A stretch of DNA of 64,000 nt, taken from the NCBI GenBank assembly GCA_964036045.1, contig OZ038378.1:140244001-140308000 (forward strand). The letters are read 5' to 3'. The notes beneath the pieces are model-generated. The model did not search any database and had not been told where the DNA came from. It was given only the letters and a program-made list of their open reading frames with translations. Shown here piece after piece: positions 21,601 through 64,000 of this stretch (within the stretch, counting starts at the first letter, position 1; each line of letters starts with the position of its first letter). The DNA is from Eutreptiella sp. 'Long Island Sound 2002'. Lineage: Eukaryota; Protista; Euglenida. The translations under genes were made by a program, and so were the position numbers.

Positions 21601-24600
21601 AGTTTTCCCGCCTTAGCAACTCAAAAATGGAAATCACCTCGCAGAGGTTGTTAGATCAAAGCCAGGCAGGCGTATATAGGGGAAAACGCCACATACCCCC
21701 CCATTTTGGCATTTTTGGGCCTATTCGCGTACCCTACCCCAAGGGGTTGAATAGTTAGTTTAACCCCTTGTAAAATCATTATTTTGTCCAATAAACGCAT
21801 CCCCAATGAGTTTTGGTCCCGGAGCCCCCCAGACCCCCCCACTNNNNNNNNNNNNNNNNNNNNNNNNNNNNNNNNNNNNNNNNNNNNNNNNNNNNNNNNN
21901 NNNNNNNNNNNNNNNNNNNNNNNNNNNNNNNNNNNNNNNNNNNNNNNNNNNNNNNNNNNNNNNNNNNNNNNNNNNNNNNNNNNNNNNNNNNNNNNNNNNN
22001 NNNNNNNNNNNNNNNNNNNNNNNNNNNNNNNNNNNNNNNNNNNCATTTTTGAGCTGTACGGGGTGAAAAACTGCATAAGCAGGTTGTGTACCAATCCCTT
22101 GGGAGACCCCCCCCCCCCCTGGACCTAATACCCAAATAGGGTGAAAAACACGTAAATACGGCCTAAAACATGCTTTCCATAGCTTGGATGGTCATTTTGG
22201 GTGGTCACAATATCAGAAAAATATGTTTCGAAAACTACCATTTTTGAGCTGTCCAAGGTGAAAAACTGCATAAGCAGGTGTGCACCCGTCCCTTGGGAGA
22301 CCCCCCCCCCCCCGACCTAACACCCAAAAAGGGTGAACAACACGTAAATACGGCCTAAAACATGCTTTACATAGCTTGGATGGTCATTTTAGGTGATCAC
22401 AATATCAAAAAAACAAGTTTCGAAAACTTCGATTTTTGAGCTGTCCAAGGTGAAAAACTGCATAAGCAGGTTGTGTACCAATCCCTTGGGAGCCCCCCCC
22501 CCCACCCCTCCCCCCCGGACCTAATACCCAAATAGGGGTGAAAAACATGTAAATACGGCCTAAAACATGCTTTACATACCTTGGATGGTCATTTTAGGTG
22601 GTCACAATATCAAACAAACAAGTTTCGAAAACTTCGATTTTTGAGCTGCCCAGGGTGAAAAACTGCATAAGCAGGTTGTGTACTGGCCCATTCACTAGGC
22701 CATTATTGGTGGAAACAGTCATTTCGCGTCTTTGGCACGGGTTGTGGACGGCCCCAGGCAAGGCTAGAGACTGCAAAAAAGTCCTTCCGTATCCTAGTAG
22801 GCATATACTGTCACAATATCCCCACTTGCACCCCTCAGAGTAGGTACCACGGGGTCACGAGGTCGACGAACATAGCAAAAATGGCTGAAAAGTGCATAAA
22901 CTGCATAAGCGCTCGTCCCACTCCGCCCCATACAAACCCCATAGAGTCGGGACCCGGAAAAACTTTTTCGGCTCAAAATCGAAAAAAACCAAAAGATTCA
23001 TGATTTTCGACCCAAAAAAAGGGGGGGTCATTTTTTGACCCCCCCCCCCCCCCACCCCCCCCCTCCCCCCCCCCCCCCCCTCCCTCAAAACCTGAAAAAA
23101 GTGGGTTTCAAGTGGGGCGGGTCTGGGGGGGTCCGGACCAAAAACTCATTGGGGGATGCGATTATTGGACAAAATAATGATTTTACAAGGGGTTAAACTA
23201 ACAATTCAACCCCTTGGGGTAGGGTACGCGAATAGCCCCAAAATGGCCAAAATGGGGGGGTATGTGGCGTTTTCCCCATATATACGCCTGCCTTGCTTTG
23301 ATCTAACAACCTCTGCGAGGTGACTTTTTTTTTTTGATATTCTGATCACCTAAAATGGCCATCCAAGGTATGTAAAGCATGTTTTAGGCCGTATTTACAT
23401 GTTTTTCACCCAATCACCTCGCAGAGGTTGTTAGATCAAAGCCAGGCAGGCGTATATAGGGGAAAACGCCACATACCCCCCTTTTTGGGGCTATTCGCGT
23501 ACCCTACCCCAAGGGGTTGAATTGTTAGTTTAACCCCTTGTAAAATCATTATTTTGTCCAATAAACGCATCCCCCAATGAGTTTTTTGTTCCGGACCCCC
23601 CAGACCCCCCCCAATTGAAACCCACTTTTTGGGCGGGGGTGGGGGTGGGGGTGGGGGGGTGGGGGGGGGGGGGTCAAAAATGTCGAAAAAATGACCCCCC
23701 CTTTTTTTGGGTCGAAAATCATGAATCTTTTGGTTTTTTTCGATTTTGAGCCGAAAAAGTGTTTCCGGGTCCCGACTCCATAGGGTTTGTATGGGGCGGA
23801 GTGGGACGAGCGCTTATGCAGTTTATGCACTTTTCAGCCATTTTTGCTATGTTGGCGGTTTTGGCGACCACGGTGACCCTGTGGTACCTACTCTGAGGGG
23901 TGCTAGTGGGGATGTTGTGACAATATATGCCTACTAGGACTACTACGACTACTACTACTTTTGTGGTCTCTAGCCTTGCTTAGGGCCATTCACAACCCGT
24001 GCCAAAGACGCGAAATGACTGTTTCCACCAATAATGGCCTAGTGAATGGGCCGGTACACAACCTGCTTATGCAGTTTTTCACGCTGGCCAGCTCAAAAAT
24101 CGAAGGTTTTGATACTTACTTATTTCTCTGATATTGTAACCACCTAAAATGACCATCCAAGGTATGTAAAGCATGTTTTAGGCCGCATTTACGTGTTTTT
24201 CACCCTATTTGGGTATTAGGTCCGGGGGGGGGGGGTCTCCCAAGGGATGGGTACACAACCTGCTTGTGCAGTTTTTCACCCCGGGCAGCTCAAAAATCGA
24301 AGTTTTGGAAACTTGTTTTTTTGATATTGTGATCACCTAAAATGACCATCCAAGGTATGTAAAGCAAGTTTTAGGCCGTATTTACATGTTTCTCACCCTA
24401 TTTGGGTATTTGGTCGGGGGGGGGGGGGGGGGGCTCCCAAGGGATTGGACTTTTCAGCCATTTTTGCTATGTTGGCGGTTTTGGCGACCTCGTTGACCCC
24501 GTGGTACCCACTTTGAGGGGTGTGAGTGGGGATATTGTGACAGTATATGCCTACTAGGATACGGAAGGACGTTTTTTGCAGTCTCTAGCTTTGCCTAGGG

Positions 24601-25470
24601 CCGTTCACAACGCGTGCCAAAGACGCGAAATGGCTGTTTCCACCAATAATGACCTAGTGAATGGGCCGGTACACAACCTGCTTATGCAGTTTTTCACCTA
24701 GGGCAGCTCAAAAATCGAAGTTTTCGAACTTTGTTTTTTTGACATTGTGACCACTCAAAATGATCATCCAAGCTAGTTATGCATGTTTTAGGCCGTGTTT
24801 ACATGTTCTTCACCCTATTTGGGTATTGGCCGCATGGGGGGGGGGGGGGGGGGGGCTCCCAAGAGATTGGTACACAACCTGCTTAGGCCGTTTTTCACCC
24901 TAGGCGGCTCAAAAATCGAAGTTTTTGAAACTTGTTTTTTTGATGTTCTCACCACCTAAAATGACCATCCAAGGTATGTAAAGCATATTTTAGGCCGTAT
25001 TTGGGTGTTTTTCATCCTATTTGGGTATTAGGTCGGGGGGGGGGGGGCGGGGAGGGATGGGTACACAACGGTTTCATGCAGTTTTTCACCGTAAGCAGCT
25101 CAAAAATCTAAGTTTTTGTAACCTGTTTTTTGGATATTGTGACCACTTGAAATCACCATTTAAGGTATGTAAAGCATGTTTTAGGCTGTATTTACATGTT
25201 TTTGACCCCATCTTGTTATTGGCCAAACGGGGGGTTCTCCAAGGGATTGGTACACAACCTGCTAATGCAGTTTTTCACCCTGGGCAGCCCAAAAATGTAA
25301 GTTTTCGAAATCTGTTTTTATGATATTGTGACCACTTAAAATGACCATTTAAGGTATGTAAAGCATGTTTAGGCTGTATTTATGTGGTTTTCACCATAGT
25401 TTGGTATTAGGTCGCGGGGGGGGGGGGGGGGGGCTCGCAGGGAATGGTACACAACCTGCTTATTCAAAAA
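18690..25470. repeat. Composite macro-repeat: module A (~210 bp) + module B (~450 bp) + arrays of a ~190-200-bp satellite monomer, in both orientations
   Basis: Module A (AATCACCTCGCAGAGGTTGTTAGATCAAAGCC...) at 19623, 21631 and 23412 (+) and at 23110-23323 (-). Monomer start TGGTACACAACCTGC at 20455, 20651, 20847, 21048 and 21238. Confidence 0.92.
21844..22043. other. Assembly gap (200 N)
   Basis: Run of N characters. Confidence 1.
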
Positions 25471-25598: not shown

Positions 25599-26168
25599 TT
25601 TGTGGCCCCTCCAGGCAATGGCCGGGCACCTCTCTTCATATAGGGGTGGGTGGGGTCTTAGGTCACCCACCGGGGGCATTTACGCATTGTGGGAACCGGC
25701 TTGGATCTCCGTTGTGTGAACCGCCTTGGATCTCCATTGCGTAATGCGTTTCGGGAACTAGTTTGGATCTCCGTTGTGGGAACCGGCTTGGATCTCCGTT
25801 GTGTGAACCGCCTTGGATCTCCATTGCGTAATGCGTTTCGGGAACTAGTTTGGATCTCCGTTGTGGGAACCGGCTTGGATCTCGGTTGTGGGAACCTGCT
25901 TGGATCCTGATTGTATAAACAAGCTTGCATCTCCACTCCCACTACTCCCTTCTTTCGTGTTTGCCGTCGTCTTGCATACTTTGTGGCCCCTCCAGGCAAT
26001 GGCCGGGCACCTCTCTTCATATAGGGGTGGGTGGGGTCTTAGGTCACCCACCGGGGGCATTTACGCATTGTGGGAACCGGCTTGAATCTCCGTTGTGTGA
26101 ACCGCCTTGGATCTCCATTGCGTAATGCGTTTCAGGGACTAGTTTGGATCTCCGTTGTGGGAACCAGC
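25599..26168. repeat. ~190-bp segment duplicated at 381-bp offset, flanking the start of the 25-bp array
   Basis: GCCGGGCACCTCTCTTCATATAGGGGTGGG... at 25621 and 26002. Confidence 0.9.
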
Positions 26169-27950
26169 TTGGATCTCCGTTGTGTGAACCAGCTTGGATC
26201 TCTGTTGTGTGAACCGGTGTGGATCTCCATTGTGTGAACCAGCTTGGATCTCCGTTGTGTGAACCGGCTTGGATCTCCGTTGTGTGAACCAGCTTGGATC
26301 TCCGTTGTGTGAACCAGCTTGGATCTCCATTGTGTGAACCCGCTTGGATCTCCATTGTGTGAACCAGCTTGGATCTCCGTTTTGTGAACCGGCTTGGATC
26401 TCCGTTGTGTGAACCAGCTTGGATCTCCGTTGTGTGAACCGGCTTGGATCTCCATTGTGTGAACCAGCTTGGATCTCCGTTTTGTGAACCAGCTTGGATC
26501 TCCGTTGTGTGAACCAGCTTGGATCTCCGTTGTGTGAACCGGCTTGGATCTCCATTGTGTGAACCAGCTTGGATCTCCGTTTTGTGAACCAGCTTGGATC
26601 TCCGTTGTGTGAACCAGCTTGGATCTCCGTTGTGTGAACCGGCTTGGATCTCCATTGTGTGAACCAGCTTGGATCTCCGTTTTGTGAACCGGCTTGGATC
26701 TCCGTTGTGTGAACCAGCTTGGATCTCCGTTGTGTGAACCGGTTTGGATCTCCATTGTGTGAACCGGCTTGGATCTCCATGGTGTGAACCGGCTTGGATC
26801 TCCATTGTGTGAACCAGCTTGGATCTCCGTTTTGTGAACCAGCTTGGATCTCCGTTGTGTGAACCAGCTTGGATCTCCGTTGTGTGAACCGGCTTGGATC
26901 TCCATTGTGTGAACCAGCTTGGATCTCCGTTTTGTGAACCGGCTTGGATCTCCGTTTTGTGAACCAGCTTGGATCTCCGTTGTGTGAACCAGCTTGGATC
27001 TCCATTGTGTGAACCAGCTTGGATCTCCGTTTTGTGAACCAGCTTGGATCTCCATTGTGTGAACCGGCTTGGATCTCCGTTGTGTGAACCAGCTTGGACA
27101 TCCATTGTGTGAACCGGCTTGGATCTCCATTGTGTGAACCGGCTCGGATATCCATTGTGTGAACCGGCTTGGATCTCCATGGTGTGAACCAGCTTGGATC
27201 TCCATTGTGTGAACCGGCTTGGATCTCCATTGTGTGAACCAGCTTGGATCTCCGTTGTGTGAACCAGCTTGGATCTCCATTGTGTGAACCGGCTTGGATC
27301 TCCATTGTGTGAACCGGCTTGGATATCCATTGTGTGAACCAGCTTGGATCTCCGTTGTGTGAACTAGCTTGGATCTCCATTGTGTGAACCGGCTTGGATC
27401 TCCATGGTGTGAACCAGCTTGGATCTCCGTTGTGTGAACCAGCTTGGATCTCCATGGTGTGAACCAGCTTGGATCTCCATTGTGTGAACCGGCTTGGATC
27501 TCCATTGTGTGAACCAGCTTGGATCTCCGTTGTGTGAACCGGCTTGGATCTCCATTGTGTGAACCAGCTTGGATCTCCGTTTTGTGAACCGGCTTGGATC
27601 TTCGTTGTGTGAACCAGCTTGGATCTCCGTTTTGTGAACCAGCTTGGATCTCCGTTGTGTGAACCGGCTTGGATCTCCATTGTGTGAACCGGCTTGGATC
27701 TCCATTGTGTGAACCAGCTTGGATCTCCATTGTGTGAACCGGCTTGGATCTCCATGGTGTGAACCAGCTTGGATCTCCGTTGTGTGAACCAGCTGCGATC
27801 TCCATTGTGTGAACCGGCTTGGATCTCCATTGTGTGAACCAGTTTGGATCTCCGTTGTGTGAACCGGCTTGGATCTCCTTTGTGTGAACCAGCTTGGATC
27901 TCCGTTGTATGAACCAGCTTGGATCTCCGTTGTGTGAACCAGCTTGGTGT
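26130..27950. repeat. 25-bp minisatellite, ~73 copies (TTGGATCTCCRTTKTGTGAACCRGC); a few seed copies from ~25690
   Basis: Direct inspection. The three long minus-strand ORFs (428, 618 and 605 aa) repeat every 25 aa, equal to three monomers. Confidence 0.98.
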
Positions 27951-28148: not shown

Positions 28149-28199
28149 CCGGTGCAAAATTATGAAGGTTAACCTCGTAGGCCGGATACCCAACTGTGG

Positions 28200-28660
28200 G
28201 GACGAGGCCCTTCACCTATGACCCCATGTGTATTGCGCGTGGAGGATTTATATTACCTATTGTACCTATAAGATACTAAACTAGGAGGACGAGGCCCTTC
28301 ACCTATGACCCCATGTGTACTACGCGTGGAGGCTTTATATTACCTATTGTACCTATAAGACCCATATCACCCATAGGCTCTATAGCACCTATGCAACGTG
28401 TGGGACTCATATGACCAAAACAACCTATGGCACCAATGACACCCACCCACCTATATGACATGTAGCACCTAAAAACCTACGGGACCTATTAAACCTATAG
28501 GAGATGTAGGACATACAGGACATACACAACCTATCACAAGTACCGGGCCTATTACACCTATAGCACCTACAGCACCAACAGGGCCTATGGCATTTACATA
28601 ACTTATAAGAGCTATAACACCTCTACCTCCTATTTACGATATAAGACCTATAGGACACAT
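28200..28660. repeat. ~72-bp tandem duplication (87-bp offset) followed by an ACCTAT-rich cryptic repeat
   Basis: GACGAGGCCCTTCACCTATGACCCCATGTGTA at 28201 and 28288. Confidence 0.8.
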
Positions 28661-28989
28661 AAGACCTCAATATGTAGATGACATGGGGTATAACTTTGAA
28701 CTTCATTCCCCTTTGCTGTTTGATGAGTTTGAGTGCTTGCCGTATGTGATCACTGCACCCAATAGGTAGACCCAAATAATCCCAAAGGCATTCCAAAGAA
28801 GGTTGCATGATATTTACCTTAAATTAACGTGTGTTCCCCCACCCTTCGCTCATCGTTCATTGCTCGAGAATGTTTATCATGCATTGTGTCTTTTGTTCTT
28901 TCAGGATCTTTGTCTTAGGGTGCTCTTGCACTTTTCTGTCAACTTTGCCTTGATCTTCGATTGACCGACTACCATCCAGTCCATAAAGA

Positions 28990-30726
28990 ATGACAGCGCA
29001 TTATGGATCAGTTTGGATGAACAACAGCTGCTTTGCGGCATCCAGTCTCCAATTCCTTGGCACAATCCCACTTTTTGTTGATTCCGTGAGCAGTGACTTG
29101 GAATCCAATATGACAGACTCTCAAATCCGTCTTGCAGTGGAACACCTTTTGATTGCTTTGATGGAATGTGGTAATGGAGAACTGCCACCCAAATCGCCAT
29201 ACACGTTTGGTAATAATGATGATTGTCACCAACAATTGCGAATTCATGTTGCCCATGCTGCGGAGTACTTAGTTCATTTCCATCCAACACACAACCGGCA
29301 ACAAGATGTGCATGAATTTCTGGGCTTGCTATTCGCGTGGATTTGGAACCTTGTATTACCATTGCAAAGTGCAGACGTTCGCACTGAAGCAGAGGCGTCG
29401 ACTCTTGAATTCCCCCTTGTACCACAAGCAATGTCCAAAGTAGGCAGCCAAGTTTTACATTCCATTTCATGCTCAAATTGTCAATATGGCAATTTACAAG
29501 TATGCATCGATATTTCTTCTTGGACGGTCGGTGTAAGTAATACACAAGGTTTACAAGGTGCTATGCAAAGTTTATTTGCCTCACAAAGTAATGTTGGAAA
29601 TTGTACGGCTTGTTCGGGAATGGCTTGCTTGAAGCGTCGAAAGCAACTGATAACGGCATCGCAATATATCATGATACATTTGTCCTTGTTCACTTTCAAT
29701 GCAGCTACTCAACAACCTTCAAAGCTACAATGTTTTTATGGGTGCCCATCACATTTTACTATTGAAGATTGTTTCGTAGGCTCACCAAATAAAGTGTTGC
29801 ATTTGCAGTTGATGAGTATCATCTTACACCGCGGTAGCTCTACCTTGTCGGGTCATTATGTGTGCTTGACTCAACGGAAAGGTTTGTGGTACGCCTGTGA
29901 CGATGAAGGTGTCACACTTGTTGAGGCGCCCAATCAATGGCTTCTGAACAATGACGACTTCACACCATACATGTATATGTTCAAAACCACAATTCAAGAT
30001 TTGAACAATGCCCATCCAAGTGACAAAGGTATGACTGCACTTGAGCAAATGTCCAACAAGGATTGTGAATCGGTACATGATTGCACATTCAGTGCAACTG
30101 AGCACATGTCCAACATGTTCAGTGATAATTGCACTGGTCAAGAAAGCCGACATGGGGATGATGAGTCAATGCATGACTGCGCAATGAGTGCGGCTGACCA
30201 CTTGTCTGATGAATCCAATGACACTTGCAATGATCAAGATGATACTTGTTCCAGCAAGTCGCATTGCACAACAACCACATCCAATGACTCAAATGAAAGT
30301 GGAGATACACAAATGTCTGTGCCCAATACTAGGCCGGGGTCACTAGCTAATGCGGATCAAACATCCGACTTTCAATTCACCACTATGCTAGCAACTCTTC
30401 CTTCATCGCTATCACCATCCCCACTGGCTAAAGTGGAATGCTTCATTGACGTTTTATCTGCCGAATCGTCGCCATTTCCCACAATACCATGGGCTTTCCA
30501 AAATTGTTTGGATGAATTGAAATCAAACGGAATTGTTCTACCACAAAAGCATTGTGCTTTTCGTGGTTGCACGTGGCAAGGAGATGACGAAGCTAGCTTA
30601 ATCGAGCATGTGACGGGTCAGCCCCAGACTCGCATACCGACGCTACTTATCGTTTTCTGTGTGCATGTGCTTTTGCTTGTTGGCAGATGTGAGTTTAGAC
30701 CAAAGTTTATTTGCCTCAGAAAGTAA
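28990..30726 (+). CDS. Ubiquitin-specific protease (peptidase C19/UCH family) domain + acidic linker + truncated C2H2 finger, 578 aa
   Basis: Cys box NNSCFAASSLQFL (Cys at 29029), QQDVHEFL (29299), internal CxxC pairs (CSNC, CTAC), His box ILHRGSSTLSGHYVC (His at 29854), WYACDDEGV (29899) and TPYMYMF. Confidence 0.88.
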   Translation: MTAHYGSVWMNNSCFAASSLQFLGTIPLFVDSVSSDLESNMTDSQIRLAVEHLLIALMECGNGELPPKSPYTFGNNDDCHQQLRIHVAHAAEYLVHFHPTHNRQQDVHEFLGLLFAWIWNLVLPLQSADVRTEAEASTLEFPLVPQAMSKVGSQVLHSISCSNCQYGNLQVCIDISSWTVGVSNTQGLQGAMQSLFASQSNVGNCTACSGMACLKRRKQLITASQYIMIHLSLFTFNAATQQPSKLQCFYGCPSHFTIEDCFVGSPNKVLHLQLMSIILHRGSSTLSGHYVCLTQRKGLWYACDDEGVTLVEAPNQWLLNNDDFTPYMYMFKTTIQDLNNAHPSDKGMTALEQMSNKDCESVHDCTFSATEHMSNMFSDNCTGQESRHGDDESMHDCAMSAADHLSDESNDTCNDQDDTCSSKSHCTTTTSNDSNESGDTQMSVPNTRPGSLANADQTSDFQFTTMLATLPSSLSPSPLAKVECFIDVLSAESSPFPTIPWAFQNCLDELKSNGIVLPQKHCAFRGCTWQGDDEASLIEHVTGQPQTRIPTLLIVFCVHVLLLVGRCEFRPKFICLRK

Positions 30727-31752
30727 TGTTGGAAATTGTACGGCTTGTTCGGGAATGGCTTGCTTGAAGCGTCGAAAGCAACTGATAACGGCATCGCAAT
30801 ATATCATGATACATTTGTCCTTGTTCACTTTCAATGCAGCTACTCAACAACCTTCAAAGCTACAATGTTTTTATGGGTGCCCATCACATTTTACTATTGA
30901 AGATTGTTTCGTAGGCTCACCACATAAAGTGTTGCATTTGCAGTTGATGAGTATCATCTTACACCGCGGTAGCTCTACCTTGTCGGGTCATTATGTGTGC
31001 TTGACTCAACGGAAAGGTTTGTGGTACGCCTGTGACGATGAAGGTGTCACACTTGTTGAGGCGCCCAATCAATGGCTTCTGAACAATGACGACTTCACAC
31101 CATACATGTATATGTTCAAAACCACAATTCAAGATTTGAACAATGCCCATCCAAGTGACAAAGGTATGACTGCACTTGAGCAAATGTCCAACAAGGATTG
31201 TGAATCGGTACATGATTGCACATTCAGTGCAACTGAGCACATGTCCAACATGTTCAGTGATAATTGCACTGGTCAAGAAAGCCGACATGGGGATGATGAG
31301 TCAATGCATGACTGCGCAATGAGTGCGGCTGACCACTTGTCTGATGAATCCAATGACACTTGCAATGATCAAGATGATACTTGTTCCAGCAAGTCGCATT
31401 GCACAACAACCACATCCAATGACTCAAATGAAAGTGGAGATACACAAATGTCTGTGCCCAATACTAGGCCGGGGTCACTAGCTAATGCGGATCAAACATC
31501 CGACTTTCAATTCACCACTATGCTAGCAACTCTTCCTTCATCGCTATCACCATCCCCACTGGCTAAAGTGGAATGCTTCATTGACGTTTTATCTGCCTAA
31601 TTGTCGCCATTTCCCACAATACCATGGGCTTTCCAAAATTGTTTGGATGAATTGAAATCAAACGGAATTGTTCTACCACAAAAGCATTGTGCTTTTCGTG
31701 GTTGCACGTGGCAAGGAGATGACGAAGCTAGCTTAATCGAGCATGTGACGGG
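29566..31752 (+). repeat. Internal near-identical duplication: 29566-30617 repeated at 30701-31752 (offset 1,135 bp, 83-bp spacer)
   Basis: CAAAGTTTATTTGCCTCA at 29566 and 30701; GCATGTGACGGG at 30606 and 31741. A few substitutions differ (CAA/GAA, AAT/CAT, GAA/TAA, TCG/TTG). Confidence 0.95.
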
Positions 31753-32263
31753 CCACCACAAAGCATCTTTTGCCCACGTTGACGAATTATCACATGCTTG
31801 TATCACGATGCAAGATGCATACCATTTGTACCAAGAAGCCATTGCCCACATTGAACGTCAGCGCATGCCCTTGGTTGGTTTTGCAATTGACCGTCGCATT
31901 ACTGTTTCATTCGCGTGGCGCTACCGAGATGAAAACATTATGTCACTCGTATGCAGCATTTGAGCACAAATTCATAGTGTGGATTTTGAATGTCATGGAA
32001 GGCCACCAATTCAATGCCATTCCCCATTGGACTCCAACAATGGAGGATCCTTTTTTGGGATGTGCAAAGAAGACACCGAGAGATTACTTGGTCTCACCAC
32101 ATATTTCAATGCCTACGGAACCAAAGACAGTGGCATGAGACAACAAGTACAAACCAAATGGTGCCTGAATGTTCCTTTCACAAATTGAATTATTCAAGTC
32201 CTATGTTGTCCCGAAGATCGTCGTTGTGTTGCATGTCCTCGTAATGCATGTGGCATACACGAC
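30659..32263 (+). pseudogene. In-frame 5' extension of the RepHel ORF (duplicated USP C-half, C2H2 finger, Cys-rich LCCPED region), interrupted by TAA 31598, TGA 31961 and TGA 32186
   Basis: ORFs 30659, 31601, 31979 and 32264 share one frame. Canonical C-x4-C-x12-H-x3-H finger CAFRGC...EHVTGH at 31688-31756. Confidence 0.85.
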
Positions 32264-35200
32264 ATGAATTGCCCCTTGTGTCCAAAATGTGAATTGCCAA
32301 TATGTGCATCTTGCTCCGATGAATTATCCCGACCACGCCCAAAAATGCCTCCATTTGCTTTGGCAAATGAAATGTGGATAGGGTACATTAATGAGTACAT
32401 CTATGAGCACCAAGTTACATACATTGAATTGTTGTGTGCCAGTCCAGTGAACACTGCAATGTTGAGCTTGACATTACAAAGGTTCAATGACCGAGTAAGT
32501 GGCTCAAGTTTAGCTCATTTGTCAAACGCACGCCTTGGCGCAAAGGGAAATGTCACTTGTTTTTCTCTGCCATGGGAGGAAGTCCACCAAATATTTTCCC
32601 AAAATGGTGGAAGGAATCATTTACCCAGATTAGGTGAGGATTTGGCTGGCCTCGTGCAAGTGGTTGTCGAAAGTCACACTCAGGATGACACGCAATTAGT
32701 TGTACAGCACGGGCGCGTGCGTCGTGCTGTGGTCGTACAGTTGATAGCATGTATGATTGAGCGCAACCACCCCGCGTACGTGGGTATAAACATGGTTGAT
32801 GTTGAACAACGATCAACACTCCTTCCGGTTGATGGCATCCCTCCCGAGATCATACGGGTCATAGTGCCTCACAAGAATGGCCCTGACCTTCATGACGGAA
32901 AGGCCGCGTTACCTCACGAGCACGGACGCTCCATTGATGGCAACATATTTCTGTCCCATGTCAACGGCGTGCAATTGGATAGATACTCCAATTCCGCCGT
33001 TGACATCAATGAACAACGTATACATCGTATCCAATCCGTTGAAGAAGCCTTGAAGTTCCCTACCGCGAAAGATGACATGTCATCAGACGAGGATGAAGTG
33101 GAAAGCATAAGTTCTAGTCCTCCAAACCTTTCTTCGCATATAAGTGCCATGTCGGGGCAAGAATATGAAATGCAAAGTGTGGATTCCACGAAGACACATG
33201 TTTCTACACAAAGAAGCCAAGGTGGGGACAAACCAACTAACACCACTGGTGATGAGCCAGTTGATAGTGAGAAACTACAAGATAGCATTGATTCTTTTTG
33301 CATTCGAACAGGAACCACCATGCAAGACCAACTACACCCAAGCTTCATAATAATTGCGTTTGCGTTCTTATTTGATTTTGGTGTTGGTAGCCCCGATTTA
33401 CGCAATCGTTCGCAATGGAGACGTGACTCCAATGCACCTCGAGTTGACTTCCCACAATTCGCGGCAGCTTTAGTGCGTCGTATTGAGGGTCAATTTAGGA
33501 GGGATTGGATTTTTGTGTTTGCAGCGTGGAACTTGATTTTCCGATCCGTGATTAATCTTTCTCGATACATCTTCAAAGGAAGGCTTTGTGATGGTACTAC
33601 TTTGGCGTCCGAGCAAATTACAGCAGAACAGTATTGCAATGCAAGCAAAGCAATAACAGCAAGTTTGACCGGAAGCTACCTCACCAAAGATGGCTCTCTT
33701 CGCCAAGTAAACGGTGACTTGTCAAAAGTTCCCTTTGTGCCAAATTTACCCCCCCTAGCTAGAGACATCTTACAAAATGTACAAAATGTTTCTACGCGCA
33801 TAGAAGGCACACATGAGGTGCGCCGCTTGATGCGACATGAAATCCAAGCCTTCCGTGTTTTTTATGGAGCCCCTCTCATTGTCACATTTTCTCCCAATGA
33901 GAGACACAACACGCTCATGCTTCGCCTATCAAGGACAAGCCAAAATGATCCGGTTTGCATAGCTCAACCATGGTTGAGACAATGGGGAGGGCATGCACAT
34001 CCATCTCTGGAATTACCAGTTGACTCATTGATTTCGGCTTTGCCATCATATGAACAACGCAGGCTCATGCTCTCCCAAGACCCCCTGGCTTGCATGTCCG
34101 CATTTCGCATTATAGTGCGTTTGGCAATGTCCACCATCTTTGGTGTTCGTGTGTGTCTTTGTTGTCCACGGTGCAACTCTCCGATGGGAAAATCGGCATG
34201 CCAAAACATCTTTGGTTCGGTTGCTTCTAGCGAAGGTGGATTCATTGGAAGGTTAGATGCTTGTTTAGGGAGCATTGAGAACCAAAAAGAAGGGGTTCTA
34301 CACATTCACTGGTTGTTATGGCCCCAATGTTTGAGTCAATTCTCCTCAATACACGACATCTCTTTGTTAATCAAAAAAGAAGGCGACAAGTTAGTAAAAC
34401 AATACACTGCTTACAAAAGTTACGTTTGTCAGGAGGTATATCATGATTTATGTGGTTTTCACATGCGCAGGAAAATACTAGAAGATGATTGGCCGGAATA
34501 TGACTCGACATTCTCCTTCCTTTTCCGCTCTCCTTTATGCTCGTTGGTTACGGATACAGCATCGGATGATATGGCTATGGTGCATTTATGGAACGTTCAC
34601 TATTGCAAGGAAGTCCAAACAAATTTGGAACATTGGAACCACCATATCCATCCATTGGCTAACACTGATGACCCAGAGGCTCGTCGACTTTTGGCAGGGT
34701 GTGTCGGTAAAGGTGAACCAAATGTTTGCCAGCATCGCTTTCCCCGTGACAAGGAGCTCGTGCCCGAAGCTTCCATATTGTGCTACGGACTCGCTTGTCA
34801 ATTTGGGTTGAAGGTTACGGGTCAACGTAATGCATTAGGGTCATTGCATGGGCCGCGAAACTGTAGTTGGCTCAATGGCACACATCCACTCCTAACCTCT
34901 TTTCTCCGTTGTAATAGTGATGTTCAAGTCCTCTATCGCTTGCCCATTTGTCCAGAAACCCATTCCAAATTTTGCACGACTCCAGATACATGTTTGAACG
35001 AACTGGCAACAAGCAACACTACAATTGAAATTGCTCTTCAATTGGCACAAGACAGTGCCATTGGGTATTTCTCTGATTATGTTGCAAAAGGAACTCCTAT
35101 TGCAACAAAGGAGATTACTAGATGGTTGCGTGGGCATGACAATTTATCCAATGACCTTCAAAAAACAAAACGTCCCAATAGCATACAATACATTGCAAGA

Positions 35201-38200
35201 CGTCATACGCAACGTTTCTTGAGCGACATGTTAGCCCGGGGCACCGCACGTGGAGCTGTTGATGTTGTGAACTTGATGTGCAATCGTCGTCAAGATGATG
35301 TGACCGCCGCGGAGTGTGTGAAGACAGCAATAACAACCACTTTTGCCGGGAACAAATTTGTTTCATTGTTAGAACGCAAAAATCGAAATCGCCCAACAAA
35401 AAGAATTGCAGATAAAGTTGTTTTCCGGGTCTCGCGCACAGGTAAAGCTGCTTCACTACAAGCTGTTCTGGATTTGGCAATGATGTACGGCTATCGTGGG
35501 AAGGACCCACGGGTACATTGGCTAAGCCCTTATGAGTTCGTGTCTCGTTGGAGACTAGTTCCTGTGTCTTTTCCTATCAACCCAAGACTAGCGGATGGTG
35601 ATCCAAAGTACCATGCTGATCTCACGTCGGAAGGGCGTGCATACATTTGTACGCAAAAGCTCGAAGGCGAAGGTCATGAATTTCATCCGGGTAAACATTT
35701 CCGAATCCGTAACGCGGGTGGCACTACTTGGATTCCCTTTCCAGATCTACCCCCTCTAGAAAAAGTTAGACATCTTTGGGTTATGGAGTACAACCCACGC
35801 CCCTTCGTGCCCATGTGGATAGGGTCTCCTATGGCACGCAACAATGATCCAGAGCAAACCGCCAAAGTGTGTTCAGCGTATTTCCGTCCATATTGCTTGC
35901 ATCAAGATTCGGCCTCGCAACATGTACCTTATGTTGATGCCCTGAGTGATCCAAAACACGCTTTCCATAGCTCTTGGAAGGCGTATGTTTCTGGGAACAT
36001 ACTGACTCTGCACATGAAAAGAGTCATCCAACAATTTCTGTGTGTTTCTCGTGTACGTTGCAAGGATGATATACTAGACTGTGCTGAAGCAAAGGCGATA
36101 CCACCTTTGAAACTAGATCACACACAATTAGACACGGCACTAAACACAAAAACGGCAAAGAAAGGTGCCAATGAGTCGAAGGACAAACAAATTTCCTCGG
36201 ACTCCGTAACAGGTATTAAACTCGCCCACGAAGCATGGCGTGCCACGAATTTGCCCAACATCAACTTTGAATCTAACGGCCCCGCACCAGTATACTCAAA
36301 CCTTCGCAAGTTGCTACAATCTGCACGCAACACTGCACGTGCGGAGCCCACCACCTCAAAGGGATTCCCTACCAAAACTAATTTAGAGCCAACTGTTGAC
36401 CCCATACCCTCAATATCCCTTTCTAAGGTGGATGCTGCACTAGCAATTTGCATTCCACAATTGAATAAGGGTCAACAAATCTTCCTACAAATAGTTGCTA
36501 ACCGTGTTAAAGAGGAAGTCACTGACGACATCAACGGAATGCATGGTAGTAGTGAGCCTCTGCGTTGGATGCTTCATGGTGGCCCAGGCACAGGGAAGTC
36601 CAAAGCGCTGGGTATAGTAGTTCAATTCTTTGAATTGCTTGGTTATGTCAAAGACAAGCATTTTGAGATTGGGGCTTTTCAAGGGAAGATGGCACGCTTG
36701 ATTGGTGGTTCCACTCTCCATCAACTTGGTGCCATGAACCTTTTTGGGAACGATGCCTCGAAAGAAAAATCAACTTTCCTATTTCTACGCCATTGCACTC
36801 TACGGTGGATCATTATTGACGAAATTAGTATGGTAAGTCCTCGCCTTCTAGCAAAATTTGAGGAACGACTCCGCACACACACCCAAAAGGCGGGAACATA
36901 CAAATGTGACCCGGATGGGACAATACGTCCTTTTGGGGGGTTCAACATCATTCTTTGTGGTGATTTTTGGCAAATACCACCTCCAGGGGAGGACTTCTCT
37001 CTCATGTCAGTACCACCGTCCATGACAGTTGAGCCCACAAAGAAGAACCCTGATGCCCTAACATCCCACGGACTAAATCTGTTATGGGGCAACGCATCCC
37101 AAGGTATTCAAGCAATGACGGAATTAACGGAAAACATGCGCTTTCAAGGAGACCCTCGTTTCCAAGCTGCCTTGGAAGAGTGCCGTCATGGTAAACTACG
37201 TAATGAGACATACGAATGGCTCATGCAATTCGTTCTTTGTGGGCCTCATGATCCCCGCTTGACGACCGACCATTTTTCTAGTGCAAAAATGATTGTCGCT
37301 ACAAACGACCTAAAATACGCAATCAACAAGCAACGCGCCATTCTTTACGCTTCTTCAAATAAAAAACACCTGACTTGGTGTCCTGCATTTGATCGACCAA
37401 CCACAGACAACATCACCAAAACGGATGCGGACACCCGTGTACGTTGGTTGCAATACCATGATCGTTGGACTGCAAACTTATATGCCATGTTACCTCTCGT
37501 ACAAGGATTGCCAATTGCATTAACCGAACACATTGACCGCTCTATCCAAAAGACTTTGTTACGTGGGACGGAAGCCTTTCTTGATAGTTGGATTCTAGAC
37601 GCACGTGAGAACTCCGTGCCAGAGAAAGGCGGTGTACGTATTCTACATTATGTACCCGTCGTGCTTTTCATTGAAGTACCGGATGCCAATTGGATAGTCC
37701 CGGGCTTAACGAGACCCGGCCTTTACCCGATTGTTCCCACTTCAAAGATATGGTACCTAGATAAGAACAAGAAGAACCCCGTTTTAAGTGTTAGCCGCCG
37801 TCAGTTTCCTATCGGTCCTGCATTTGGCATTACCAGCCATAGTTCGCAAGGTCAAACCTTGAATGCTGCCATTATAGACTTGGTAGCAGATGACCCTATT
37901 TTGTGCTATGTTGCACTTAGTCGGGTTCGATGCTCTTCGGATTTGCTCATCTATCGTCATTTTCCTAAGGAAATCTTCCAACGTGGTGACCCGCTTGGTC
38001 CTACATTCCTTCTAAAGAGACTCCGTGAAAAAACTTTGACCTACATCACCACGAGGCATCTTATTTCAATGCAAGTTGCTGCAACTTGTGTGCAGTGTGG
38101 TTGCCAAGACTACCATCATATTGCATCATCCGATCTACCTAATCCCCCACCTTTCACTTGTGATGATTGTGCACATGATGTCACAAAAATGAAGTTTTGC

Positions 38201-40243
38201 AACATATGTGGACTCCCCAAGCCAATGCCAAGCTTTTCTCCTTCCCAGTGGCAAATGCCTTTTGAAGAGCGCCGTTGCAAACAATGTTACAAACAAGTGG
38301 CAAACAAGGTCATTTGCCCTTCTTGCCAACAACAACGCATGGTATCCGAAATTAGTGCAAGAGGTACATGCAACCGATGTACCAAGGTCACTTGCCCTTC
38401 TTGCCAACAAGAGCGCATGGAATCAGAAATCACAGCAAGAGGTACATGCAAACGATGCACCAAGGTCACTTGCCCTTCTTGCCAACAAGAACGCATGGCA
38501 TCAGAAATGAGCGCAAGAGGTACATGCAACCGATGTACCAAGGTCACTTGCCCTTCTTGCCAACAAGAGCGCATGGAATCAGAAATCACAGCAAGAGGTA
38601 CATGCAAACGATGCACCAAGGTCACTTGCCCTTCTTGCCAACAAGAACGCATGGCATCAGAAATGAGCGCAAGAGGTACATGCAACCGATGTACCAAGGT
38701 CACTTGCCCTTCCTGCCAACAAGAGCGCATGGCATCCGAAATTAGTTCAAGAGGTACATGCAACCGATGTACCAAGGTCACGTGCCCTTCTTGCCAACAA
38801 GAGCGCATGGAATCAGAAATGACGGCAAGAGGTACATGCAAACGATGCACCAAGGTCACTTGCCTTTCTTGCCAACAAGAACGCATGGCATCAGAAATGA
38901 GTGCAAGGGGTACATGCAACCGATGTACCAAGGTCACTTGCCCTTCTTGCCAACAACAACGCATGGAATCAGAAATTAGTGCAAGAGGTACATGCAACCG
39001 ATGTACCAAGGTCACTTGCCCTTCTTGCCAACAAGAGCGCATGGCATCCGAAATTAGTTCAAAAGGTACATGCAAGCGATGCACCAAGGTCACTTGTTCT
39101 TCTTGCCAACAAGAGCGCATGGCATCCGAAATGAGTGCAAAAGGTACATGCAACCGATGTACCAAAGTCACTTGTCCTTCTTGCCAACATGAGTGCATGG
39201 CATCACAAATTACTGCAAAAGGGACATGCCAGCAATGCACCAAAGTCACTTGCCCTTCTTGCCAGCAAGAGCGTGTGCACTCCGAATTTGGTAAACATGC
39301 AACGTGCCAACGTTGTAGAACTATCTGCTGCCCATGTTGCAACCTTGAAAGAATGCCTTGTGAATTCAATGCTGGAGGTGCTGACCAAAGATGTGTGCAT
39401 TGTCAAGCCGCGGGACTACAATGCGCCTCGTGCAATGAATTAAAGCCAAAAATATCCTTTACCGCTACCCAAATAGCATTAGGCAGCAACAGAAGATGCA
39501 TACATTGCTCACAAAAACAAAAGAAGCCCACCAAACGTTCATTGCAAGATGCACTACAATGCTTCTCTTGTGGTATTCAGCAGTTGCGTGCAGACTTTAC
39601 AAAGAGCCAATGGAAACTTGGTACCAAAAAGCGTTGTTCTTCGTGTGTTGCTTCAAAAAGTTTCAATCAACTTGACAAACATGAGAAAGGCAAGGAGCAA
39701 TCGTCACACAAAGGTCTCAACGAAAAGCAAACAACCAACATTCGACCACAGGCCATCACTAGTGATGATGAAGAATATGCATTACCCCCGAGAAAAAAGA
39801 GGCATGCTATTCACCAAGAGGAGTCAACTGGTCATCAACCCAAAATTTTCACCAATGACGATGAAGAGCATGTATCACATACAAAGCGAGTTAAGAAGAA
39901 CCAGGCCAAAAAACGGCCTCATGACGATCTACAACCTAAATCTCCCCACAAGCGCAAACCACAAAAAAACCAAGACACCGCATCATCATCCAACATGACC
40001 AAAGCACAATGCCTGCTTGATCTCCCCATTGCTTCATATCCGGCAATGTATGAATATTTGGACAAAAACAATTTTGAAGTTGGCATGCAATTGCTTGGGG
40101 CTACAAACAAAGCTAACATCCGCAAGCAATATCTTCACCTATCAGTAAAGCTTCACCCGGACAAAGATCAAACGAACGTTCATGCCACCGAATGATTTGC
40201 ATTACTTCTTAGGACATATGAGATGTTGCAAAAAATGCCATAA
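32264..40243 (+). CDS. Helitron Rep/helicase: DUF6570-like + HUH-Y2 Rep + PIF1-type helicase + Stc1-like C4 fingers + 13 CxxC repeats + C-terminal J-domain (TGA at 40193-40195 falls inside the J-domain; natural stop TAA 40241-40243)
   Basis: PPFALANEMWIG; AFLFDFGVG; IEGTHEVR...GAPLIVTFSP; IENQKEGVLHIHW; LNGTHPLL..LRCNSDV; YFSDYVAK; GGPGTGKS (36578); IIIDEISMV (36818); FGGFNIILCGDFWQIPP; AFGITSHSSQGQTL; YVALSRV; IRKQYLHLSVKLHPDK...E*FALLLRTYEML. Confidence 0.92.
38306..39319 (+). repeat. Coding 78-bp tandem repeat, 13 units (KVTCPSCQQERMxSEx(S/T)ARGTC(N/K)RCT)
   Basis: AAGGTCA at 38306, 38384, 38462 and onward; translation in the ORF track. Confidence 0.97.
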
Positions 40244-40306
40244 TGCTGCACACTATTAGGCACATCCAAAGTAGTAATGGTGTGCATGCCAGTAGTCAAC
40301 CACAAT

Positions 40307-40398
40307 GTCATGCATGACGCATGTAAGATGTGCGTCACCTGAGGTGACCGGACTCAAGTGGGATCCATGACTTGAGCTTCGCAACCGGTGGCGCCGGT
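40307..40398 (+). terminator. Cluster of four palindromes/hairpins; candidate Helitron 3' terminal signal
   Basis: GTCATGCATGAC (40307-40318), GTCACCT-G-AGGTGAC (40334-40348), CTCAAGT-10nt-ACTTGAG (40353-40376), ACCGG-5nt-CCGGT (40384-40398). Confidence 0.5.
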
Positions 40399-40559
40399 AG
40401 CAATATGGTCATTGGTTTCGCTTGCCGAAGGCCGAAGGGTGATTCCCATTTTGCTTTTGCAAGTCTACCCTTAAAACTCTTTTTGCATATGCATCAACAG
40501 CATTATGATGTAAGCCTAGCAACATCGGCTAGCAAGCGGCGGGCAAATCAAAAGAGCTT

Positions 40560-40560
<1 letters not shown>

Positions 40561-40617
<57 letters not shown>
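40561..40617. repeat. (GT)n microsatellite at the right flank of the Helitron
   Basis: Direct inspection. Confidence 0.98.
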
Positions 40618-40618
<1 letters not shown>

Positions 40619-40639
40619 TATTGTGGCAATGTGGTACAC

Positions 40640-40890
40640 CACCTCCATCAACAACCAGAACCCGGTGCTGTGGGGATTTTGGACAATGTCTAGTCCTGTT
40701 AATCGGATTTTGGCGACCACCTCCACCATCAACCAAGATCCGACGTTGTGGGGATTTTGGATCATGTCTAATCCTGGTAGTCGGTTTCTTGACCTCTTGA
40801 ACACGGTCTACATACAAGCAATACCGACGCTTTGGGGATTTTGCATCATGTCACGTCCTGTTAGTCGTGTGCTTGTAATCCTCTATACAA
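40640..40890. repeat. Three diverged 78-84-bp tandem units (TGGGGATTTTG core)
   Basis: Core at 40671, 40749 and 40833. Confidence 0.75.
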
Positions 40891-41279
40891 CAACGCCGCA
40901 ACCAAATACACCCACCAGCTACTTACTTGCCTGCCGCTTCCGGAGATTGGTAGGGCTACTGGCGAGGACACTCCGGGGCTTTCCAAATCAAAGCCAAATC
41001 AAAAGTCCGGCCATTCGGCCCCCGCAAGTCGGGAACGACGGCAAGGCGGGGCCTCCAGGGTACGTCGGAAAGACCGCCACTAAACCCCTCTATTCTTGGT
41101 TCTCCAAGTACATTTTGTGTTGAGTAATTTACCATCACCCTACAACCCGAATTGGAATGAGACCAATTTTTTTTAAGATGCTCATAATAAAGCAAGGCAA
41201 GTTTCTGTGAATTTGGGCAATTTAATTTTCATAGCGAGATCCCCATCAACAGCTCATCACTCAAGTGTGCATTGCTCAT

Positions 41280-42400
41280 GGCAGTTCTCTGCGAGGTGGA
41301 CATGCCGAGAGCAATAGAATTTTGGGTATTAGGGTATTACCTCCGGGGGGGGGCGGGGGGGGTCTCCCAAGGGATTGGTACACAACCTGCTTATGCAGTT
41401 TTTCACTCTGGACAGCTCAAAAATCGAAGTTTTCGAAACTTGTTTTTTTTTGATGTTGTCATCACCTAAAATGACCATCCAAGGTATGTAAAGCATGTTT
41501 TAGGCCGTATTTACGTGTTTTTCACCCTATTTGGGTATTGGGTTAGGGGGGGGGGGTCTCCCAAGGGATTGGTACACAACCTGCTTATGCAGTTTTTCAC
41601 CTTGGACAGCTCAAAAATCGAAGTTTTGGAATTTTTTTTTTTTGATATTGTCATCACCCAAAATGACCATTCAAGCAATGTAAAGCATGTTTTAGGCTGT
41701 ATTTACGTGTTTGTAACCTTATTCGGGTATTGGGTGGGGGGGGGTCTCCTAGGGGATTGGTACACAACCTGCTTGTGCAGCTTTTCACCGTGGAGAGCTC
41801 AAAAATCGAAGTTTTCGAAACTTGTTTTTTTGATACCGTGATCACCTAAAATGACCATCCAAGGTATGTAAAGCATGTTTTAGGCCGTATTTATGTAGTT
41901 TCCACCCTATTTTGGGTACGTGTTGCTCGGTGTAGATTCTCTGCGAGGTGGACTTGCCGAAGGCAATAGAATTTCGGAAACTGATTTTTTTGATACTTTG
42001 ACCATCCAAAAAGATCAAATATCCTATGTAAAGCATGTTGTAGCCCCTCTTTATGTGTTTTTCACCCTATTTGGGTGTGGGGGGGGGGGGGGGGCTCCCA
42101 AGGGGTATAGGGCACAACCTGCTTGTGCAGTTTTCCCGCCACAGCAACCCAAAAATGTAAATTTCCGAAACTGATTTTTTTGATACTTTGACCATCCAAA
42201 AAGATCAAATATCCTATGTAAAGCATGTTTTAGCCCCTCGTTATGTGTTTTTCACCCTGTTTGGGTGTTGGGGGGGGGGGGGGGGCTCCCAAGGGGTCTA
42301 GGGCACAACCTGCTTGTGCAGTTTTCCCGCCTCAGCAGCTCACAAAAGGTTGTTCCTCTCCCCTCTTCGAGGTGCCTTGCCGAAGGCAATAGAGTTTGTG
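41280..42400. repeat. Second array of the ~190-200-bp satellite (same family as 20.3-25.5 kb), ~5-6 monomers
   Basis: Shares the GGTACACAACCTGCTTATGCAG...AAATGACCATCCAAGGTATGTAAAGCATG monomer and the CTCTGCGAGGTGGAC junction module. Confidence 0.93.
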
Positions 42401-53491: not shown

Positions 53492-54967
53492 CTGCAAACA
53501 AAGAGCGCCGGGAACACTGCACATGGGGGTCTCACAAATAAGAACACGCGAAAAATAAGAACACGCAAACAAATAAGAACACGCGCATGTTCTTGTAGGG
53601 GGGGGGGGGGGCTTTAGAACGCGTAGAATGTCTCTAGAGGCACACACAAAGGCAACAAAGAACAATGCTCAAAACACCGAGCACACGTGGGCTGCATAGC
53701 ACCAAGGCAAGGGCGTAGGCAGGAGGCAATTGTGCTTCTGTCATTGGAATGCAGACACTTCCCATCCATTTCGAACTGTTGCAAGTGTGTGGCGGGATAC
53801 AGGGGTGCAGGCATGGCAACTACACGAGAAAAGACAAAAAACAATGCTGGGTGATGGGTGTGAAGAAATTAGGGCCCGGGGGACGCATAGAACGCGTAGA
53901 TCGTTTCCCGAGGCAGACTCAGAGGCACCAAACCGAAACACGCAGAACGTGCAACACACGCAGCATGTGTAGCACCAAGACGGAGGCAGAGGCGGGAGGC
54001 AATTGTGATTCTCTCCTCGAAAATGGCTGAATTGTGCCAAACAGATAGTTCCATCGCGTCGGGCACCCTCGAAAACCCCCCGGAAGCACAAAACAGTATT
54101 GAAAGCAAAAACGCGAGAATTTTTCGTTTTGCGCGCTCTACGCGTGGTAGCCAAAGGATTATGGTGGCACTGGACCTCAGCAAGACATGCATGGGACTAC
54201 GCTATCCCCAGCCCTGACTGGGAATTCATGCCAACCCTTGCACTGTGGCCTCACCTGGGATCTACAGCCCCGGATTTCAAACAGCTGGCAGCATGCCAAC
54301 TGTGGCCGCAAGGGGCGCTTGGGACACGCCGGGGGCGGGCACTGAAACTGCCACTAATGTCCTCGTTGACATCTCCGGCGATGATGCCTCAACAGACGAA
54401 GACGGGGACAATGCACCACAACCCATGGAACTCTCTGGCCCGCCTAGTGGAGAGACCAACCGACCCGGAGCCCAACGACCTTCGACTCCTCGTATGACAA
54501 GCGGCCCCAGGAGCGGAACGGCACATCCGCGTTCGTGTCCGCATACCGCGCCGGCCCCGAGCCCCGCACCCAAGTAAGCAACGTATGCTAGATCCGCGCG
54601 GACAAGTGCCATTACGCCGATTGCGGCGCAAGAGTCACCATAGCGTGGCAGCACTCTCGGCTTCCAATTACGGTGAAGCTCGCATCGTGCGCGGGGCCTC
54701 CTTGACATGTGGTGGGTTGAAAATATGCACATGGCGTTGGAGGACTCGTGGAACTTGGAAGCCGCAATGCGTGACACCCAACTGCTGGTCCTTACCGTTC
54801 ACCGGACGAGGCGTCCGGTCGGGAGCTCTTGGGAACTCCTGCAGTCGCGGTGGAAATGCCTGCAAGGGGATTTGGCCCGGCTAGGGCGGTCATGGTCCCC
54901 CCCACGCTTTGGGCGAAGTGGGGCGGGCCCCATGTTCTTTCAGGCGGGGGCCATGGCACTAGAATAG

Positions 54968-56200: not shown

Positions 56201-56400
56201 AGAATACCCAATTTTGTTGCAGTCTAGAACGGCTAGAACGGCTAGAACTAAATAAAGTGGGGGTCACCCTAACCCGTGGGAGTAAAGGGTTGGTGATATG
56301 AAGGCTACAACTCGGGCCCCCCTAACTGTACTAGGGGGCCCACGTTTTGTTTTTCCTAATTTCACGGTTTAGCCATCAAATTGGTCAGGGAAAAAATGGT

Positions 56401-56490
56401 GTTCTAGCGACGTTCTAGCGACGTTCAAGCGAGAGCCACTAGCATGCGCTAGAACGTCGCTAGAACACTTCGCTAGAAGATTGCTGGAAC
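56401..56490. repeat. Palindromic cassette copy 1 (perfect 20-bp inverted repeat)
   Basis: GTTCTAGCGACGTTCTAGCG (56401-56420) and CGCTAGAACGTCGCTAGAAC (56447-56466). Related GCTAGAAC repeats at 56223-56248. Confidence 0.9.
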
Positions 56491-58801: not shown

Positions 58802-58935
58802 AAGAAAGCGTTCCAGCCACGTTGTAGCAAATTGTTTCAACGATGTTCTAGCGAAATGCTAGTGGCGACGGTGTCGATTTGGCGAGATCAACGCTAGAAC
58901 GCTTCGCCATATCAACACATCAACGCTAGAACAAA
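58802..58935. repeat. Palindromic cassette copy 2 (diverged)
   Basis: GTTCCAGC and GTTCTAGCG on the left; CGCTAGAAC twice on the right. Confidence 0.75.
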
Positions 58936-60178: not shown

Positions 60179-60297
60179 CGCGTTCTAGCGGTGTTCTAGG
60201 CCACTATTCTAGCGGCGTTCTAGCGAACTTCTAGTGACCGATTCCGCTTGCTAGATCAACGCTGGAACGCTCGGTTAGATCATCGCTAGAGCACGCA
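60179..60297. repeat. Palindromic cassette copy 3
   Basis: (G)TTCTAGCG three times on the left; CGCTGGAAC and CGCTAGAG on the right. Confidence 0.8.
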
Positions 60298-63927: not shown

Positions 63928-64000
63928 GTGGAAAATAGACACAGTTCCGCGCGCGCACAGGGCGCACTGCGTGCACTACGGCCCCGTGGGGGCGGGGGGG

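Follow-up and report, generated by a model that had tools for sequence, protein, structure and literature searches.

The accessory domains carried by rolling-circle transposons are among the few clues to what these elements need from their hosts. The HLE2 clade of Helitron-like elements was defined in the HELIANO study (Nucleic Acids Res 2024, PMC11417382), in which DUF6570, encoded upstream of the Rep nuclease, serves as its marker and UCH and HSP20 are listed among 20 domains that such elements stably carry. Its main text, which names about 19 of the 20 captured domains, nowhere mentions DnaJ (PMC11417382). UCH was reported there as enriched in HLE2 subgroups c and d, mostly from lungfish and axolotl, and as lying in an open reading frame (ORF) separate from that of the Rep-helicase (RepHel) transposase. 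In Helentrons, VTD domains cleave K48- and K63-linked ubiquitin, OTU domains are untested, and the role proposed for both kinds of deubiquitinase is to shield proteins needed for transposition (Nat Commun 2022, PMC9741609). A deubiquitinase on a Helitron is already known, both as UCH (PMC11417382) and as VTD (PMC9741609). Here we describe a locus in the photosynthetic protist Eutreptiella sp. 'Long Island Sound 2002', at positions 28990-40243 on the forward strand of a 64,000-nt stretch of contig OZ038378.1 (hereafter the window), in which a USP deubiquitinase and a J-domain appear to be parts of the transposase itself. We consider, with a probability of roughly 80%, that the locus is a degenerate copy of an autonomous HLE2-clade Helitron-like element whose active form encoded one USP-to-J transposase of 3,372 aa. 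From the N- to the C-terminus, the active protein would consist of USP, an acidic linker, a C2H2-like finger, DUF6570, an HUH/two-tyrosine Rep, a PIF1 helicase, Stc1-like Cys4 fingers with a 26-aa repeat array, a basic linker and the J-domain.

A search with RepHel returned a 94%-identical protein, the representative of a cluster that comprises 84 RepHel fragments (at least 90% identity) from one public assembly. Three further copies of the element in the same assembly (L001, L005 and L010) can be aligned to the window from the 5' leader through the 3' region, at 90-99%, share the domain order USP, C2H2, DUF6570, Rep, helicase, fingers and J, and, like the window copy, lie on contigs or between flanks of their own. 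The majority consensus of the four copies, assessed by counts of stops and indels, is 10,119 nt long and open for 3,372 codons, with its sole stop at codon 3373. Every lesion is private to one copy and none is common to two. The original prediction, made from the window alone, had proposed a giant RepHel polyprotein that starts with USP, includes a zinc-finger array and ends in a J-domain, and had suggested a search for further genomic copies; the RepHel search gave the three collinear copies, with USP and J in frame with RepHel in the consensus, and the proposed architecture is borne out by four collinear copies and an open consensus.

The window copy itself is dead and degenerate: a tandem duplication, 1,135 nt long with its filler, and three point mutations, each creating a TGA codon, have disabled it. 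It is listed as two ORFs on the forward strand, of 578 aa (28990-30726) and 2,643 aa (32264-40195), the second being the longest truly open stretch. By an offset identity scan, 29566-30617 recurs at 30701-31752 (offset 1135, 4 mismatches), exactly where the duplication had been predicted, and the 83-nt filler at 30618-30700 that separates the two repeats is unrelated to their sequence. Joining 28990-30617 to 31753-40243 gives 10,119 nt in one continuous frame that ends with TAA at 40241-40243. The length and the single frame hold as predicted, but the frame is not open: it contains three in-frame TGA codons that had gone unmentioned (31961-31963, 32186-32188 and 40193-40195), and the reading of the joined frame as an intact protein of ~3,372 aa in the window copy had to be given up. 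The last of these stops falls within the J-domain, 8 codons past the HPD. A 70-nt GT-AG intron in the filler that would rescue the frame was considered and rejected; a TAA of its own interrupts the second repeat copy at 31598-31600. The filler is part of a repeat of higher copy number, with a read depth of 150-200 against ~40 around it, and contigs leave it into unlike sequence on both sides.

None of these lesions is found in the other three copies, from which the duplication is absent and which read TGT, GGT/GGA and CGA at the three stop sites. The sense bases T at 31963 and G at 32186 are present in every contig listed, both from two DNA-type runs (X1 and X2) and from estuary metatranscriptome libraries (X12 at 31963, X13 at 32186), and 40193 is C (CGA) in every other contig listed, X12 and X13 included. 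The lesions of L001 and L005 include single-base frameshifts at joined-frame positions 201, 1932 and 9838, all in homopolymers (CCC/AAA, T6 and A7), which may be long-read sequencing errors; in that case L005 would be close to intact, its one stop lying in the repeat array.

It could be argued that the element carries USP and J as genes in their own right, each with its own message or joined by splicing, and not as parts of one polyprotein. Gene callers do break every copy into separate UCH, RepHel and DnaJ ORFs, and the vertebrate HLE2 elements keep UCH apart from RepHel (PMC11417382). However, the splits stem from copy-private lesions, and the four-copy consensus has no stop from USP through RepHel to J. 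The linkers are in frame in all copies, and their indels are multiples of 3 or lie within homopolymers. We therefore regard separate genes as unlikely, though this is the most serious of the alternatives.

The single USP-to-J protein also bears the marks of selection. The ratio of non-synonymous to synonymous substitution rates (dN/dS; Nei-Gojobori method, pairwise between copies) is 0.31-0.36 over the entire frame. By domain it is 0.27-0.43 for USP, 0.19-0.39 for Rep, 0.25-0.27 for the helicase, 0.22-0.24 for the finger block and 0.07-0.19 for the J-domain, the last from few substitutions (3-6.5 non-synonymous against 4-11.5 synonymous). The acidic linker, at about 1-2.3, is unconstrained. 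These values indicate that much of the divergence between copies arose under purifying selection on the entire protein, USP and J included. Because dN/dS between copies is well below 1, USP and J were selected parts of the transposase. The chance local fusion that the original prediction had named as its own possible undoing is ruled out, since the four copies are collinear in USP and J, the consensus is open and both domains show purifying selection.

The same values bear on whether USP and J are host gene fragments, passively captured and of no use to the element. The capture of gene fragments is well known in Helitrons (PMC11417382), and relatives at 35% identity (P0004 and P0006) are without USP and J. 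Here, however, USP and J are complete domains that retain their catalytic or contact motifs (Cys and His boxes in the first, HPD in the second), their dN/dS argues against passive cargo, and they occupy the same position in families that are 48-57% identical. Passive capture thus seems very improbable. A host gene domesticated from a Helitron would likewise show purifying selection on a RepHel-derived ORF. Against it stand the multitude of copies at different loci, every one with disabling lesions of its own, the repeat-rich ends and common 3' boundary motif that the copies share, and the death of the window copy itself; we give domestication hardly any weight.

Several points weigh against a mobile HLE2 element with a USP-to-J transposase, in addition to the few substitutions behind the J-domain ratio. 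No copy examined is intact. The RNA evidence consists only of short metatranscriptome contigs from libraries that could contain DNA; these contigs cover the ORF at low depth, and one DNA run has much the same ratio of satellite depth to body depth as they do. The HLE2 placement comes from a marker domain and not from a tree. A search near the 5' region for an inverted copy of the 3' motif, such as terminal inverted repeats of the HLE2 type would show, found none, and the one candidate terminus is that at the 3' end. The J-domain is without helix IV. Finally, the roles given to USP, the fingers and J are drawn from knowledge of their families.

The coordinates of the features are collected in Table 1. 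The Pfam UCH/USP match spans aa 10-330 of the first ORF and exceeds the gathering score. The Cys box NNSCFAASSLQ (29020-29052), the His box SGHYVC (29848-29871) and the motif WYACDDEGV (29887-29913) place the catalytic Cys, His and Asp of peptidase family C19 in NNSC (aa 11-14), GHY (aa 288-290) and CDD (aa 303-305). In a PDB sequence search, the domain matched the solved structures of USP46, USP12, USP5 and USP36 and an unnamed ubiquitin carboxyl-terminal hydrolase (6tbm), to which the His box aligns. Rep shows motif I, LIVTFSP (33875-33907), the HUH motif LHIH (34298-34321) and the two-tyrosine motif GYFSDYVAKG (35063-35092). These motifs are kept in 12 close homologues, and the most distant homologue, P0023, is without the first Tyr. 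The helicase shows Walker A, GGPGTGKS (36578-36601), and Walker B, IIIDEISMV (36809-36835). An HUH and two-tyrosine Rep is thus followed, toward the C-terminus and within one ORF (32264-40195), by a PIF1 helicase, which is the RepHel arrangement. No Helitron transposase, such as that of the HLE1 element Helraiser, was matched in the PDB sequence search at E 0.001. We assign the element to HLE2 because DUF6570, the clade marker, is present and an apurinic/apyrimidinic (AP) endonuclease domain is not: none of the protein pieces has an Exo_endo_phos match in Pfam, and the C-terminus consists of zinc fingers and the J-domain. The absence of a C-terminal AP endonuclease sets the element apart from subgroup b of HLE2, the Helentrons in the strict sense.

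The domains expected from the first reading of the sequence were recovered to different degrees. The Pfam search found UCH, DUF6570, Helitron_like_N and PIF1. The predicted C2H2 finger is there as a C-x4-C-x12-H-x3-H pattern, and its only profile match is weak (Zap1_zf2, E 0.019). The 13 CxxC repeats are confirmed by tandem-repeat and repeat searches as 13 units of 78 nt, or 26 aa each, with two CxxC pairs per unit; the number of units differs among copies by multiples of 78 nt. The Stc1-like label needs a qualification. The window protein itself scores 18.5-18.7 bits against Stc1 (PF12898), below the cut-off of 24.8. A phmmer search with the 332-aa tail brought up finger-region relatives at E 1e-12 to 1e-6, and the six that were scanned are true PF12898 members at 29-70 bits. 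Since its relatives pass PF12898 while the window protein scores below the cut-off, the region may fairly be described as 'Stc1-like'. The predicted involvement in chromatin silencing has this sub-threshold resemblance as its sole basis, and we do not uphold it.

The C-terminal J-domain fares better in the other copies than in the window, where its HPD motif is present and the DnaJ match (18.1 bits, E 0.003) is below the Pfam cut-off of 27.8 because the TGA at 40193 truncates the domain. The intact J-domain of L001 reaches 34.4 bits (E 2.3e-8), above the same cut-off, with LHPDKD between helices II and III, and matches the solved structures of DNAJA3 and DnaJ in the PDB sequence search. The prediction of a J-domain thus holds for the family and, by score, not for the window copy. 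The protein stops just past helix III (...YEMLQKM(P/L)*), and its Pfam match takes in positions 13-54 of a 63-position model. The basic linker ahead of the J-domain holds clusters that resemble a nuclear localization signal (NLS) and may act as one; a 130-aa stretch overlapping it (nt 39599-39988) has 29 K+R.

Table 1. Features of the Helitron-like element and its surroundings in the window (positions in nt of the window).
Feature	Position	Strand	Evidence and remarks
25-nt tandem array, ~90 units, 5' region of the element	25687..27947	+	Tandem Repeats Finder (TRF) and repeat search; same place in L001 and L005
Unique 5' leader ahead of the start codon	27948..28989	+	2 x 87-nt repeat at 28185-28358; collinear with L001, L005 and L010
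USP/C19 deubiquitinase domain	29017..29979	+	Pfam UCH, E 3.7e-20, 73.1 bits against a cut-off of 23.9; PDB matches
Acidic Ser/Thr-rich linker	29980..30429	+	25 D+E against 6 K+R in 150 aa
C2H2-like finger, C-x4-C-x12-H-x3-H	30550..30617	+	Last His past the duplication junction, 31753 onward
Private lesion of the window copy	30618..31752	+	83-nt filler (30618-30700) and second copy of 29566-30617 (30701-31752); 1,135 nt in total
Continuation of the frame with two private TGA codons (31961-31963, 32186-32188)	31753..32188	+	Other copies: TGT and GGA/GGT
DUF6570, with a Cys-rich stretch before it	32336..32794	+	Pfam PF20209, E 2.6e-13
Rep (HUH) nuclease	33473..35092	+	Pfam Helitron_like_N, E 3.1e-11
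PIF1-type superfamily 1B (SF1B) helicase	36518..38068	+	Pfam PIF1, E 1.5e-9; PDB PIF1 matches, E 1.4e-11
Zinc-finger block	38087..39646	+	Stc1-like finger 38192-38290; 13 units 38305-39273; three more Cys4 fingers 39329-39646
Basic linker	39647..40036	+	NLS-like clusters PPRKKRHA, KRVKKNQAKKRP and PHKRKPQK
J-domain, helices I-III, HPD at 40154-40162	40037..40243	+	TGA 40193-40195 cuts the window copy; family stop 40241-40243
3' non-coding region	40244..41325	+	Ends in the candidate terminal motif ...GCCGAGAGCAATAGAATTT (41285-41325)
~190-nt satellite with poly-G tract	41327..42349 (+); 19624-25466	both orientations	Joined to the 3' end of the element; also upstream

Among other Helitrons in the same public assembly, the two accessory domains turn up in different combinations. 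A family that is 48-52% identical to that of the window (L003 and L006) has an N-terminal USP collinear with RepHel and a similar CxxC array, and ends without a J-domain. L003 holds 6.8 kb of foreign DNA between its DUF6570 part and Rep (L003:1481-8279), probably a nested insertion. Conversely, a 5'-truncated fragment of a ~57% identical family (L007) retains the array, fingers, linker and J, with the HPD decayed to QPN in this dead copy. A very distant element (L011, 2778-10279) has weak DUF6570 and Helitron_like_N matches, a strong PIF1 match and then a DnaJ ORF at 38.6 bits, and no USP was found in those of its ORFs that were tested. Since sister families hold USP without J, or J without a detected USP, the two domains are modular additions that recur among the Helitrons of this host. 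In addition, the J-domains of L011 and the window are 47% identical but the helicases behind which they sit only 29%, as movement of the module between families would have it. We therefore suggest, tentatively and with the odds leaning somewhat against it, that the Helitrons of this host have repeatedly built J onto the C-terminus of RepHel and, in some families, USP onto its N-terminus, that the modules move between families, and that chaperone recruitment in cis could be a working part of transposition, convergent with polyomavirus large T antigen.

Relatives at ~35% identity, from marine metagenomes and Symbiodinium and including P0004 and P0006, have long N-termini without USP or J; among named proteins, the nearest to RepHel are the 'pfh1' proteins of Symbiodinium, at 31-35%. 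No long proteins that share the C-terminal fingers, linker and J came up in a search for them, and an exhaustive search with the 332-aa tail yielded nothing beyond fragments of the family, Stc1-domain proteins and a few J-proteins; the locus of the J-protein P0073 has no transposon context. The USP search recovered only copies of the same family and no donor of the domain. By language-model features, the nearest Atlas clusters to the USP (28990-30000) are compact, USP-only proteins of giant viruses (Nucleocytoviricota), a lead without alignment support. In two metagenomic Helitrons (P0023 and P0026), a USP lies C-terminal to RepHel; that of P0023, the only one of the two compared, showed no BLASTP similarity to the window USP beyond a faint His-box match. 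These USPs and that of the window are probably independent acquisitions.

The surroundings of the coding region are rich in repeats. The 25-nt array in the 5' region expands and contracts among copies: it takes the form of a ~268-nt higher-order unit in L005 and is reduced to ~2 units in L010. In the leader of L010, the 320-bp segment that corresponds to 28506-28825 is inverted (9487-9808), and the rest is 97-99% identical. The 1.08-kb 3' region holds no ORF that the copies share in frame. Unique homology with L001 and L005 stops at 41322, just past ...GCCGAGAGCAATAGAATTT. The candidate 3' end, ...GGCAATAGAATT at 41310-41321, has a short stem upstream; the ends that define a Helitron-like element are a 5' TC and a 3' CTRR with a hairpin, or those of the HLE2 type with T-T insertion. 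The same terminal motif closes blocks of the adjoining satellite at 41962-41973, 42385-42396 and 21440-21451, and at 41974, directly past the first of these, dozens of contigs diverge into unrelated sequence, which looks like a transposon terminus. The satellite has 100-1000 times the read depth of the Helitron body and may be a tandemly arrayed, non-autonomous Helitron derivative. Rfam gave no match in the window, and a euglenid spliced-leader motif gave no meaningful one. Farther downstream, at 54000-64000, the GC content is 59-65% against ~45% in the Helitron, and many overlapping ORFs occur on both strands, presumably host genes.

If the active protein is built as the consensus suggests, its parts could work together as follows. 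The basic linker would carry the protein into the nucleus, where RepHel would nick DNA and unwind the element for rolling-circle transposition. USP would probably strip ubiquitin from the transposase or from its replication and repair partners, with protection from degradation or altered signalling as the outcome. The J-domain would dock the host Hsp70 through its HPD loop and trigger ATP hydrolysis, and Hsp70 might fold the 370-kDa protein or else remodel and release Rep-helicase-DNA complexes. The sister lineages with USP and no J, or with J and no detected USP, are natural controls for what each module contributes.

The closest described systems are the HLE2 elements with UCH (PMC11417382), which likewise combine DUF6570, Helitron_like_N and PIF1 with UCH at a conserved position relative to RepHel. 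The family described here differs in its protist host and in that its transposase begins with USP, in frame. Helentrons with VTD or OTU domains (PMC9741609) resemble it in joining a rolling-circle transposase and a deubiquitinase in the same ORF, but the domain predicted here is of the USP/C19 class and there is no AP endonuclease. Deubiquitinases (OTU, VTD and UCH) are now a recurring theme in these elements, to which this family adds an in-frame USP that is under selection. As for Stc1 (PF12898), a tandem zinc-finger domain, the Cys4 fingers that flank the array have true Stc1-domain relatives, whereas the 13-unit, 26-aa array lies outside the Stc1 model, and there is no link to the role of Stc1 in fission-yeast RNA interference and heterochromatin. 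The original prediction had supposed that the combination of USP, Stc1-like fingers and DnaJ was undescribed. The carriage of UCH, DUF6570 and HSP20 by HLE2 elements was known (PMC11417382), and a full-text literature search that paired DnaJ or J-domain with Helitron or Helentron gave only incidental co-occurrences. What is new in the USP is the variant, in frame and in an HLE2 element of a protist, whereas neither the J-domain nor the full USP, Stc1-like and J set turned up in any report in the searchable literature.

A parallel for the J-domain comes from outside the transposons. In polyomavirus large T antigen, a J-domain with HPD, which recruits Hsc70, shares one protein with a replicative helicase and an origin-binding domain that has the Rep/HUH fold; DnaJ and DnaK act on the lambda P-DnaB complex and on plasmid RepA. 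In large T antigen, however, J is N-terminal, the helicase belongs to SF3 and not to PIF1/SF1B, and the origin-binding domain does not cut DNA; homology is limited to the J-domain. The joining of J, origin-binding and helicase functions in one protein is thus best seen as an analogy of design and not as membership of one group. A J-domain on a Rep-helicase transposase predicts that Hsp70 is a cofactor of Helitron transposition, in parallel with the chaperone-dependent replication initiators of viruses and plasmids.

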